From contig CM074807.1 in the NCBI GenBank assembly GCA_037447605.1, forward strand, positions 2,552,327 to 2,616,326: a DNA stretch of 64,000 nucleotides, written 5' to 3'. Both the position numbers and the translations under genes were made by a program. This DNA comes from Zygnema circumcarinatum SAG 698-1b. Its lineage: Eukaryota > Plantae > Zygnematophyceae. Position 1 is the stretch's first letter, and each line of letters starts with the position of its first letter. Shown here in pieces: positions 40,228-49,069 of this stretch. The notes under the pieces are model-generated. The model was given only the letters and a program-made list of their open reading frames with translations, had not been told where the DNA came from and searched no databases.

Positions 40228-41001
40228 TCCCCCTCCCTTCCTCCCCTTCCCTCACCCCTCGCCCTCTCTCTCTCCAGAGTGCTCTACCCTCCTACCCTCC
40301 CTCCCCACAGTGCAGGCCCGCGTGGTTTCTCCGGGCACCCGATGACGTCAGCTGACAGCCCCAAACACTAACGATCCCTCCCCAAAAGGCCCCGTCCGTA
40401 CCGTACAGAGTTCTTGGACAGGCTGGTCACCAGCTGGCAGACCCGCAAGCGACAAAACAGGGACACGCGCATTCTCACTCGCTAGAAAAGGCGGAACTGA
40501 GCCCTGCCTGTCGGCTGACAACGTGACAAACTGGATGTACGGAGAATCGTAAACATAATTTCTTGTCCTTTTCTCCCCGCGGCTCGCTGGGCGGGTGGGG
40601 GCAGGCGCCGGGCCCAGCCCGCCGCAGGTCGCGGTGACGTCACGCGGGCGGGGATTGAGCGCGCGCTGGTGCAAGCGCCGCCGAGTCGAGTCGAGTCGAG
40701 TCGAGTCGGAGTCGCGGTACCCTGCAGTGCAGGGTTTTGCGCTTTAGGGCAAAACTTTAGGGCTCGCGGGCGTCAGAGAGGAGAGGACGAGAGGAGTGGG
40801 AGAGGGGAGAGAGAGAAAGAGAGAGCGAGGGGTGGATGGGGGAGAGGGGGGAGAGAGGGAGTGAGAGAGAGTAGAGAGAGGAGAGATAGAGGAAAGAGAA
40901 CGCGGGGGGGAGGGAAGTGAGTGAGAGAGAGGAGAGAAGAGAAGAGAGAGAACGAAGGAGAAGAGGGGAGATTGGGAGAGCGAGAGTGAGAGAGAGGGGA
41001 A

Positions 41002-44605
<3,604 letters not shown>

Positions 44606-44879: not shown

Positions 44880-44991
44880 TTGTCCTTTCTTCCCGCGGCT
44901 CGATGGGCGGGCGGCGGCGGAGGTGACGTCACGCGGGCGGGGTTTCAGTACGCGCTTGTGCAAGCGCCGCCGAGTCGAGTCGGAGTCGCGG
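44880..44991 (+). promoter_or_regulatory. Copy of the RAE1 upstream module (homologous to 40563-40717) upstream of the glycosylase-like gene
   Basis: Shared blocks TTGTCCTTT..CCCGCGGCTCG.TGGGCGGG, GGTGACGTCACGCGGGCGGGG, GTGCAAGCGCCGCCGAGTCGAG, TCGGAGTCGCGG in the same order and orientation. Confidence 0.8.
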
Positions 44992-45377: not shown

Positions 45378-45738
45378 TATTGTTGGAGTCACATATAGCG
45401 TGCGGGTGGGCGGGCGTCGCGGAACGAACTTGCAGTTGGAGAATGTAGGGTTGAATTTGGGGCGGGCGGGAATGGGCGCGTGGGCGAGCGGTGAAGGGGA
45501 GAGAGGGAAAGGAAGCGGCGCAGTTTCAGAGTTAAGGGAGCACCCATGCATTCATGTATGCATGCATGCATGCCCTGGGAGGGCCCAGGCTATGTAGGGT
45601 TTGGAAGTCTACACCTTTTCAACTTTGATGCACTCTTATGAAGTGAAGTTGCGCATAAACTTTGATGATTCTGGCGTCGCTTTCGTAATAGTCAACGCCG
45701 ATGCGCAGTCACAGGCATTCGTGGAAACAGCAGAAGCC

Positions 45739-47492
45739 ATGAAGCGCATGTCCATGCCAGCATCCTTAACATCATCATCATCATCATCATTCGTTCCATT
45801 AAAAGCAGCAGTTTTATCTCCTCGGGAATCATCTCTATCGCCATCAACATCACCAACCTTACCCGCATTCAGATCATCGTCATCGTCTTTTCGGAGCCCT
45901 TTCTTAAGGGCTCGATTTGCAAAAACCATGGCCCATTTTGGTCAAAAAATTCTTAAAGAAAAAACGGCGAAATATTTGCCGGATTTCACTGTGAGGTCTT
46001 TGAACACGTTCCTTCCGTACGAAGATTTCAAGCAATCCGTGAAGTGCTTGGACAGCAGGCGTCTTGGAAAACAGGTACGCGTGTTGTGCTGCTTGAACTT
46101 CAACGGAAGTTTGCAGTTTTTTTAGGGTTAGGGTTTCGCCCATACCCTTTTCTTTCTCCTACTTTTTATCGACTCCGGACATCCCTCGGCAAACCTTGAC
46201 ACACTTCTTGCCGAAAACCTTATAATGTGTTAACAAATAGCGAAATCCTGAAAAATCGAATACATCACTTAACCCTAAAAATCGGAGATATGGAGGACCC
46301 TAAAGACTGAGGAAGTGTCAGATGGAGCAGAGTGCAGTTCTGCTGCTCTGCAGCAAAACTGAAAACGGACATGGAACCGTGCAGAGCAGCGCGTAGAGGC
46401 TCGACAAATTCTGAATGTCATCACGGAGGCTTCTAAGAGCAACGCATGGCGCAACAGCCCTGCGGTCAGTGCTCCTCTCTCTCTGTCTCTGTCTCTGTCT
46501 GTCTGTCTGTCTGGTCTCTCTCTCCCTTTTCCCTCTCCTTTCCCTCCTTTCTCCAATTGTCTAGTCCCCCGATCCCTCTCCCCCTCCCTTCCTCGCTTTC
46601 TTCTCTCTCTCTCTCGCTCTCTGTCCCTCCATTTTTTTTCTCTCTTCCGCTCTTTCTCCCTCTCCCGCCCACTCATTCTACACTTCCCTCTCCCTTCCTA
46701 TTCCCTACATCCTCGCTCTCCCTGCGAACCCTTAACAGTCTCTCGATCCTTCCCCTTCCCCTTCTCTCTCTCCCTCTACTTTCTTCCCCTCCCTCCTTTC
46801 GCCTGCGGTTCCCTCGCCTTCCTTCCTCCTCTCTCCTCCCTCTTTTCTGCTTTTCTCTATATACCTCCCACTCCCTCTCCTCCCCTCCCCTCCCCTCCCC
46901 TCCCCAAATCTCCCCCCTCCGAGCCCCACCAAAACAAACTACTTTTGGATCTCACCATTTCTTTGGTGATCCACGGCCTTATGAAATCACAAAACGAACT
47001 GAAACAGTAACAGAGAACGTGGAACTGGGCCTGCAGGTCAGAATGTGGCGAGGCCACCCCCTGGCTCTCATGCTCTACTACAACGAGTGTTTGCAAGAAT
47101 GGAAAAATCGCGGATTTCGAAACATTCTCCTCCTCCCTTCTGAAGTAGAGGAGAAGGACATCTCTATGCCCCCATGGCTGGGTACGTCACAGTCCACATT
47201 TTCTCAGAGTTGATCCATTTCTCCCCCCTTTTCTTCTTTTTTAATAAAATTTGATTGTATTCTTACCACGCGGCACAGGCTGGCATGATATGATGTGTGA
47301 TCTGATGCATGTGCAGGAGATGAGCGTCTACATGCTTCACATCGCTCGAATCTGCTCCGTAAAGATCCGTTGTACTATGCGCAGTTTGGCTGGAAGGAGC
47401 CTCCAGATTTGCCTTACGTCTGGCCCGTGCCCTTGAATCTCCCCCCTGCAAAGCAAGGCAAGGCGCTGCAAAAAGATGAAGAGAAGAAGTGA
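45739..47492 (+). CDS. Pyrimidine-dimer DNA glycosylase / endonuclease V-like protein (MSMEG_6728-type) with N-terminal organellar presequence
   Basis: Exons 45739-46074, 46390-46464, 47037-47181, 47317-47492 give 243 aa. Core LNTFLPYEDFKQSVKCLDSRRLGKQRVEARQIL...WRNSPAVRMWRGH...EWKNRGFRN...MPPWLGDERLHASHRSNLLRKDPLYY...DLPYVWP matches the recalled MQTFLPY..D.RRLGKQRVE..HPA..MW.G..PPWLG...H.SH.S.L.RKDP..Y..LPYVWP pattern. The first 87 aa are Ser/Pro/Arg-rich. Confidence 0.85.
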
Positions 47493-48110
47493 GCGGGTTC
47501 ACGGAAATGTCCTGAAACGTAAACAAGTGTACGGCACGTTTTTTTCCTGTATTTGTAATTTTTTAGATATATATGGTCCCTCCCTCCGTCCCTCATTGAC
47601 TATAAGATAGGCACTCATATGAGCAGAGGCTTTGTGTAGAACAGGAACTGAGAGGCGAGCAGAGGCCATTTGTGCAAAGTATCTCCTCGACTTTGTGTTT
47701 TGGATGCGCCGTGTTCTCTCCTTTTCCTCTCCCTCTCCCACTTTCCCCTTTCCTTTCTCTCTCCCTACCAAAATTGCTACCTTCCAATATCCAATACACG
47801 GCGAATCCTAATCTTGAAACCTCGCTGTCTCCCAGCCAAGTGTCGATCATCAGGTTCGACTGAATTTGGATTTTTGAATGATCGGCGGCTTCACCTTCGC
47901 AAACCCTCCCTCTCTCTCTCTCGCTTTCTCTCTGTCTGTCTGTCTGGTCTCTCTCTCTGTCTCTCTCTCTCTCTCTCTCCCTCCATTTTTTTTCTCTTCC
48001 GCTCTTTTTCCCTCTCCCGCCCACTCATTCTGCGCTTCCTCTCCCTTCCTATTCCTTACATCCGCGCTCTCCCTGCGAACCCTTAACATTCTCTCGATTT
48101 TCTCCCTTTC
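46490..48110 (+). repeat. Two direct copies of a pyrimidine-rich dispersed repeat (46490-46760 in intron 2; 47930-48110 downstream)
   Basis: Shared complex core CCCTCCATTTTTTTT...CTCCCGCCCACTCATTCT...CCCTTCCTATTCC.TACATCC.CGCTCTCCCTGCGAACCCTTAACA.TCTCTCGAT, roughly 125 bp at high identity, preceded by (CTGT)n-CTGG-TCTC in both copies. Confidence 0.85.
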
Positions 48111-49069
48111 CTCTCCATCTCCCTCTTCCTCTCCTCTCTCTCTCCCAATGATATTTTCTGAATTCTGCTATAAACATTTTTCCATGTTTCAGCCATTGTT
48201 TTGAATCATGAATCTGAATCTGAATCATTTTCGGAATTATGCAATGAGAATATTCCATGCTTTAGCTATTTTTTAAACTATCCTCTGAAAATCTTGCATG
48301 TTTGAGCTATTTTCGAAATTTCAAGTCCTTGTTCAGTGTTGGGCTGAAAAACGCTTATGTGTCCATTCTTTTCTTGGATTGTAAGCTGAAAAAAGAACAC
48401 GAAACGCCTAAAATATGAACCATTTTCAGAGCAGAGATGAAGAAACGGGCTGAACGGCTGCCGTCCTGAAAGTCGTCCTCCATGTTAATTTACATTACAA
48501 AAAAATGAAAGTTATGAGTTTCAATTATTGAGAAGGGTTGGCTGCCTGAAAGTCCGCCATGTTTACGCCAATGTTTGAAGTGTGCGCTGCCATTTGGTAC
48601 TGAACTGAACCACGCGTTCAAGTGCAGCCTTTCCTGCCCTCACTCACTCTGAATGGGCGGAGAGGCGTCCCCGCCCTGCCCGTGTTGCGGCTTCGGCTCC
48701 ACCGCGAGGCCGAGAGGGAAGGCAGGAAGCCGTGAACCAAAGCGAGCCGGCAATTCGGCATACGCCGCAGGTCCTGGGCCTCGCCACCAAATGGGGCCAA
48801 GATCGTAAATAATAAGTAGAAAGTAATAGCACCAGCAATAGAGGGGGGCGCTAAAATTAGCGGAGGGAGGGGCGGAGGGAGGGAAGGCAGAGGGGAGGCG
48901 GAGCGGGGAGGAAGGGGAGGGAAGGGAGAGAGATACCGACTGGGGGAGGGGGAAATCGCGGATCGGAACGGGTCGGAAAGAACGGAACGGAACGAAACGG
49001 CGGAGGCCTCAAGAGTCGTCCGTACGGCTAGCTCATGGCCGGGAGGGGGAAGGAGGAGGAGCAGGCGCC

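Follow-up and report, generated by a model that had tools for sequence, protein, structure and literature searches.

The 64,000-nucleotide stretch of the Zygnema circumcarinatum SAG 698-1b genome analyzed here (contig CM074807.1 of assembly GCA_037447605.1, positions 2,552,327 to 2,616,326; referred to below as the window, with all positions counted from its first letter) carries a spliced and expressed gene whose product joins an N-terminal leader to a domain of the MSMEG_6728 subfamily of Pfam Pyr_excise, the family that includes T4 endonuclease V (DenV). The four exons combine into a frame of 732 nucleotides (nt), which encodes 243 amino acids and a stop codon, and the three introns are all of the GT..AG type, in phases 0, 0 and 1 (Table 1). 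The RNA evidence consists of assembled public RNA contigs from four runs, X1 to X4. A single 960-nt contig of run X1 spans 45484-46071, 46387-46463, 47036-47180 and 47316-47465, and in it the three introns are spliced out at the predicted junctions, within a placement ambiguity of 1-3 nt. The same joints are found in runs X2-X4, together with some contigs that retain intron 1. The four-exon, 243-residue model put forward by an earlier reading of the sequence alone (the sequence-only reading) is thus borne out by RNA at every junction.

Table 1. Features of the glycosylase gene and of the protein it encodes; positions refer to the window.
Feature	Positions	Strand	Description
5' untranslated leader	45484..45738	+	Contigs of the four runs begin at 45484-45514; zero depth further upstream
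Exon 1	45739..46074	+	Residues 1-112: leader (residues 1-87) and start of the glycosylase domain; GT donor at 46075; joint seen in RNA
N-terminal extension, candidate organelle-targeting peptide	45739..45999	+	87 residues; absent from prokaryote and phage homologues
Candidate processing site V85-R86-S87 / L88	45991..46002	+	Reads T-V-R-S / L-N-T-F-L-P-Y
Invariant motif, first half, D105-S-R-R-L-G-K-Q112	46051..46074	+	D, R, L, G, K and Q the same in all 121 family members compared
Intron 1	46075..46389	+	315 nt, phase 0, GT..AG; splits RLGKQ/RVE; joint 46071/46387 (+3) in four runs; partly retained in X2-X4
Exon 2	46390..46464	+	Residues 113-137; carries the invariant R113 and E115
Intron 2	46465..47036	+	572 nt, phase 0; CT-rich, with a dispersed repeat; 46463-47036 join in X1 record 1 and X4 record 22
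Exon 3	47037..47181	+	Residues 138-186 (first base of the Gly186 codon); has the EW..RGF motif
Intron 3	47182..47316	+	135 nt, phase 1, in the Gly codon of PPWLG/D; joint in all four runs
Exon 4	47317..47492	+	Residues 186-243 and TGA stop; NF038085 positions 113-148, 42.7 bits; conserved HASHRSNLLRKD and LPYVWPV
3' untranslated region	47493..47879	+	RNA contigs run on to 47755-47900; end not defined; possible overlap with a neighbouring transcript

At 45739, the ATG is preceded by a purine at -3 and stands in a better context than the in-frame ATG at 45628, and it agrees with the starts of the orthologues. It is therefore the best choice of start, though not a proven one, and the length of 243 residues carries the same caveat. 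The choice is less than certain because the transcript leader of about 255 nt holds 11 upstream ATGs, one of which, that at 45628, is in frame; its context is weak, and its use would prepend 37 acidic residues. Overlapping ATGC/ATGCA repeats at 45546-45575 provide 6 of these 11 ATGs, and the short upstream reading frames measure 11-31 codons. A further observation concerns exon 2 (75 nt, in frame), which is skipped in one X2 contig that joins 46071 to 47034, at a depth of 24 compared with 58 at the normal joint. The skip drops residues 113-137, the invariant R113 and E115 among them, and the resulting form may be a minor, presumably inactive isoform.

The window protein belongs to the MSMEG_6728 subfamily of Pyr_excise, in agreement with the sequence-only reading, which had recognized its motif series, RRLGKQRVE included. 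The spliced protein as a whole was analyzed in local scripts, and the official hidden Markov model (HMM), structure and database searches used exon pieces, the homologue P0059 or orthologues. The exon translations match the NF038085 model (MSMEG_6728_fam) in collinear order: residues 89-112 of exon 1 fall on model positions 2-25, exon 3 falls on 49-77, and exon 4 falls on 113-148. The scores of these pieces, 27.9, 20.3 and 42.7 bits, amount to 90.9 bits with exon 2 left out, against a curated cutoff of 100 that is set for whole proteins; the orthologues, which are 53-64% identical, reach 119-142 bits. On the Pfam model PF03013 (Pyr_excise), whose match the sequence-only reading had also foreseen, exon 3 alone scores 24.6 bits and exceeds the gathering cutoff of 23, the orthologues score 65-73 bits, and T4 DenV scores 53 bits. 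The best non-eukaryotic match to the window protein is P0059, whose full length (residues 1-134) pairs with residues 88-223 at 58% identity, gap-free at the splice junctions; the family proteins matched over their full length measure 134-150 residues. In addition, a local HMM built from 121 family members matches the window protein end to end (positions 1-140) with 184.5 bits, and all 15 invariant columns of alignment A1 (F, L-D, R-L-G-K-Q-R, E, W, L, Y, W, Y) are present in it, the RRLGKQ/RVE motif being interrupted by intron 1.

The family is large, with about 8,000 members by word-index search and 4,799 representatives by exhaustive profile search (E value <= 0.001), both searches being seeded on the window. 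The word-index search seeded on exon 1 returned P0001 and P0121 only, and the annotated protein of the window locus itself was not recovered by word-index searches seeded on that exon. The short exon-2 piece was left out of one search profile, where MAFFT had misplaced it. For ten longer family members, the cluster look-up returned metagenome proteins only.

For the fold, the AlphaFold model of P0059 (predicted local distance difference test score, pLDDT, 95.6) was used, not a model of the window protein. Comparison of this model by VIA-align with the T4 endonuclease V structures 1ENK, 2END, 1ENJ and 1ENI gave Z scores of 9.7-9.8 over 104-105 residues, and the next unrelated match reached 4.6. 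In this superposition, residue 1 of the P0059 model falls on chain residue 2 of T4 endonuclease V, and the structural matches between P0059 and DenV are 12-18% identical. Foldseek searches with the same model were weak (E value about 2-4, template modelling score <= 0.56). PF03013 matches residues 1-87 of T4 DenV and residues 1-82 of P0059, both from profile position 1. Judged by this model, assignment of the T4 endonuclease V fold is sound for the family, because the Pfam profile covers DenV and P0059 alike from its first position and because the model match reaches Z scores of 9.7-9.8. The likeness to DenV thus comprises a small all-helical fold (via P0059), PF03013, the E-x-x-x-R-G-[FY] motif and a size of 134-138 residues. 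On the other hand, the N-terminus is M-Q-T-F-L-P-Y in the family and L-N-T-F-L-P-Y in the window protein, whereas that of DenV is M-T-R-I-N-L; and the window protein, unlike DenV, is eukaryotic, split by introns and extended by a leader of 87 residues.

The closest matches to the window protein are two proteins of Spirogloea muscicola (64% and 53% identity), two of Adiantum nelumboides, one of Marchantia paleacea and the pair P0121 and P0276, all of which bear N-terminal extensions; the plant orthologues are annotated merely as hypothetical. In a maximum likelihood tree of 158 sequences and 142 columns, built by quick search and without the other eukaryote-looking AlphaFold DB entries, the window protein and its streptophyte relatives form one clade with a Shimodaira-Hasegawa-like approximate likelihood ratio test (SH-aLRT) support of 96. 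The gene structures agree with this grouping. The Marchantia paleacea orthologue has one intron, of phase 1, in the Gly codon of PPWFG/D, matching window intron 3 in both position and phase. P0121 runs into an intron at the equivalent Gly, and the Spirogloea protein P0145 has a 20-residue insert precisely at the site of window intron 1. An AlphaFold DB cluster representative of 212 residues, with the domain at 60-196, also matches; its accession is presumably that of Physcomitrium patens. Further AlphaFold DB matches have accessions that look eukaryotic. The window gene is therefore a member of an old streptophyte gene family with zygnematophyte, liverwort and fern relatives. A Pro/Arg-rich insert, disordered in the model, occurs in the land-plant orthologues (residues 81-100 of P0131, about 68-85 of P0125) after the first long helix and before the W-x-N-x-P motif, and the window and Spirogloea proteins are without it.

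Outside the eukaryotes, the family members are bacterial and viral. The named genomes include Gemmatimonadaceae and Desulfovibrionaceae, 70 phage records contain a family member, and giant-virus clusters are found as well. The closest non-eukaryotic relative, P0059/P0274, sits on a phage-like contig (L004, Logan SRR33375180, 2067-11873), and the genes of this phage-like block include a nucleoside deoxyribosyltransferase-like gene, NUDIX, NAMPT/NAPRTase, RtcB and an RNA/DNA ligase. NF038085 members from bacteria and phages share with the window protein an end-to-end alignment, the invariant residues and the collinear HMM matches; in contrast to the window gene, they begin directly with Met1 of the domain and lack introns. 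What sets the streptophyte clade apart from them is Leu at the position of Met1, the leader, the [V/I]-R-[S/G/A] junction and a C-terminal VWPVPL motif. Because the domain is otherwise bacterial and phage-borne, a single acquisition of the gene from such a source is probable, and because the Spirogloea, Marchantia and Adiantum orthologues share the leader type, the junction motif and an intron, any transfer must be ancient. The most economical reading is one ancient acquisition with vertical inheritance ever since. The sequence-only reading had called the enzyme bacterial or phage in type, which holds, the family being overwhelmingly prokaryotic and phage-borne. It had also taken the gene for a horizontal acquisition; bacteria, phages and some giant viruses dominate the family, but the gene is not peculiar to this alga, for orthologues exist in Spirogloea, Marchantia and Adiantum. 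Their existence goes part of the way towards what that reading had named as refuting it, namely orthologues that are widespread, vertically inherited and already characterized, although none of those found has been characterized. A recent transfer specific to the alga was rejected on account of the orthologues and the shared intron.

The leader has the composition of an organelle presequence, which the sequence-only reading had suspected. Its 87 residues contain 27 serines and threonines (31%), 14 lysines and arginines and 3 aspartates and glutamates, and the first 63 residues are 32% serine with one acidic residue. Across eight streptophyte proteins (that of the window and seven others), the leaders measure 31-87 residues, contain 4-14 lysines and arginines and 0-3 acidic residues, and are rich in serine, threonine or alanine; they cannot be aligned with one another. 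In the model of the Marchantia protein, the leader is unstructured (pLDDT 52-70) and the domain scores 91-98. The border between leader and domain is conserved: [V/I]-R-[S/G/A] precedes L-[N/Q]-T-F-L-P in 8 of 8 streptophyte sequences. Leu88 of the window protein occupies the place of the initiator Met in the free-standing proteins, and 220 of 267 other family members begin exactly there. The prokaryotic N-terminus, M-Q-T-F-L-P-Y, is at least 90% conserved. Stromal processing follows the motif V/I-x-A/C / A and mitochondrial processing an Arg at -2 or -3, both of which [V/I]-R-[S/G/A] / L resembles. In sequence terms, the junction resembles a conserved site of presequence processing, cleavage at which would yield an N-terminus where the free-standing enzymes begin. 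Its conservation across lineages supports a processing site, and says neither that cleavage occurs nor which organelle is concerned. The near invariance of the first seven prokaryotic residues suggests that the N-terminus matters, as it does in DenV, and it is the apparent importance of this terminus that makes the idea of leader processing attractive.

On balance, we consider it probable, without great assurance, that this spliced and expressed nuclear gene of an old streptophyte family encodes a DNA glycosylase of the T4 endonuclease V fold, carried behind an organelle-import leader, which removes a damaged base from organellar DNA. The gene would have been gained once from a bacterial or phage source and inherited vertically thereafter; introns and leader would have been added after the acquisition, and the initiator Met would have changed to Leu. 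The precursor would be imported into plastids and/or mitochondria, and a processing peptidase would cleave it at the conserved [V/I]-R-[S/G/A] / Leu junction, so that the mature enzyme would start at the same point as the free-standing prokaryotic enzymes. This enzyme would excise the damaged base from organellar DNA in the absence of light and then nick the strand, the most likely target being the 5' base of a cyclobutane pyrimidine dimer. The data above show the gene model, its expression, the family membership, the fold of the family, the orthology and the conservation of the junction; what we infer in this scheme is import, the precise point of cleavage, the residues that catalyse the reaction and the substrate.

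A narrower proposal, which we advance tentatively and hold to be a good deal less probable than the general reading, is that import and activation are coupled. With its N-terminal amine buried inside the leader, the precursor would have no catalytic activity, and organellar processing alone would create the required N-terminus, providing light-independent dimer excision in the organelles of non-seed streptophytes. If this proposal were true, a DNA-nicking glycosylase would be kept off nuclear DNA and would be active only inside plastids or mitochondria; non-seed streptophytes would also have a dark excision route for organellar dimers induced by ultraviolet (UV) light, a route that has not been reported in Arabidopsis.

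Several points weigh against the reading as an imported, dimer-excising glycosylase. The first set concerns the distance from DenV. Neither P0059 nor the family profile found T4 endonuclease V when searched against PDB sequences, and the profile-profile alignment to DenV is confident over 14 residues only, those of the E-x-x-x-R-G-[FY] helix; exon 3 EW..RGF against DenV EC.KRGF is the sole stretch aligned with any confidence, and with hhalign, DenV by itself or a set of 60 DenV homologues was matched over only 14-27 residues. Two registers are possible for the catalytic Glu, the counterpart of T4 Glu23: a greedy profile-profile alignment would set Glu115 (of RVE) on T4 Glu23 with near-zero confidence, a local pairwise alignment gives another register, DYRRL against EYREL, and Asp105 and Glu115 are both invariant across the family. 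The second set concerns function and history. In the literature searched, activity of any MSMEG_6728-type protein was not found, and MSMEG_6728 itself is described only as a SigF-dependent 'conserved hypothetical'. The leader could target the plastid, the mitochondrion or neither. The 11 upstream ATGs leave both the true start and the efficiency of translation uncertain. Finally, the phylogeny foreseen by the sequence-only reading recovers the streptophyte clade, but the support for its sister group, at 58, is too low to point to a donor lineage.

The main rival keeps the targeting described above and changes the substrate, the enzyme acting on another lesion or on a modified base, for example abasic sites, ring-opened purines or phage-type base modifications, as part of general organellar base-excision repair. 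The MSMEG_6728 subfamily is uncharacterized, the kinship with DenV is distant, at 12-18% identity with no sequence-level PDB match, and the invariant Lys of RLGKQR has no DenV counterpart in the tentative alignment; many members, moreover, lie in phage genomes amid genes of nucleotide metabolism and RNA repair. All of this would suit another substrate. The fold match to DenV is nevertheless unique and covers the whole domain, both Pfam and NCBI place these proteins among the pyrimidine-dimer glycosylases, and the strictly conserved N-terminus of the free-standing proteins fits the N-terminal-amine chemistry of DenV. Another substrate is therefore a serious possibility to which we assign a minor share of the probability.

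A nuclear or cytosolic role is less likely again, and we regard it as improbable. Here the extension would not be an import signal: the protein might begin at Met64, a possible internal start, or at the in-frame ATG at 45628, which would give it an acidic N-terminus, and the conserved [V/I]-R-[S/G/A]-Leu would do no more than form the opening turn of the folded domain. In the annotated Spirogloea proteins, the C-terminal tail is indeed long and contains basic clusters such as PRRKR, which would accord with such a role. However, eight leaders that are basic, hydroxylated, poor in acidic residues, unrelated in sequence and variable in length look just as import peptides do; disorder is predicted for the Marchantia leader; and the prokaryotic members need nothing ahead of Met1, where 220 of 267 start. 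Bacterial or phage contamination, or a dead recent insertion of foreign DNA, might be imagined from the phage or bacterial nature of the closest non-plant relatives, but it is excluded for practical purposes by the three spliceosomal introns removed in RNA, by the position of the gene between eukaryotic genes, one of them directly flanking it, by an intact frame with every invariant residue, and by orthologues in three other streptophytes with an intron shared with Marchantia.

The kind of enzyme is already known, and what is not described is the streptophyte form, leader-bearing, split by introns and with Leu in place of Met, together with its possible organellar role. The pyrimidine dimer glycosylase of chlorovirus PBCV-1 (A50L), a DenV-type enzyme associated with green algae, shows that the fold works in a eukaryotic cell. 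Unlike the window gene, A50L is virus-encoded, is a close relative of DenV outside the MSMEG_6728 subfamily, lacks a leader and is not encoded by the host. Another comparison is offered by the land-plant DNA-3-methyladenine glycosylase (MAG), which is of bacterial origin, became fixed early in plants and is discussed in relation to UV and terrestrial life (PMC5570899). MAG differs from the window gene in fold and substrate and in being retained in seed plants, and it is not proposed to need leader processing.

The repair of pyrimidine dimers in plant organelles has been called poorly understood or controversial (PMC6981420; PMC7761550), and a review of plant base excision lists no such glycosylase for Arabidopsis (PMC10573277). 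Reviews of plant base-excision repair, of the dark repair of UV lesions and of mitochondrial DNA repair make no mention of such an enzyme; in a survey of horizontal gene transfer in Physcomitrella, the terms glycosylase, pyrimidine and endonuclease are all absent; and a description of the plant family was not found in the literature searched. To the open question of how plant organelles deal with UV dimers when no light is available, a gene present in a zygnematophyte, a liverwort and a fern brings a concrete and testable candidate. The same gene would give the MSMEG_6728 family its first functional handle, and whether a catalytic N-terminus can arise by leader processing could be cleanly tested with it.

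With respect to its surroundings, the gene lies in a eukaryotic setting. Directly upstream and on the same strand (41046-44050, +) is a multi-exon WD40 gene like the messenger RNA export factor RAE1/GLE2, seen as open reading frame fragments between introns rich in CT microsatellites. A 61-nt direct repeat, 92% identical and containing the palindrome TGACGTCA, occurs at 40633-40693 and 44922-44982; one copy precedes the RAE1-like gene, and its partner lies about 500 nt ahead of the point where the glycosylase transcript starts. Within intron 1, plant telomere-type motifs of telo-box-like character are found at 46120-46140, 46270-46282 and 46297-46306, as TTAGGGTTAGGGTTT on one strand and as AACCCTAAAA and ACCCTAAAG on the other. 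Finally, a CT-rich dispersed repeat, 75-84% identical between copies, lies at 46565-46775 in intron 2, at 47917-48126 just past the 3' end and, weakly, at 43849-43971, and cut reads are reported in the CT-rich repeat stretches.

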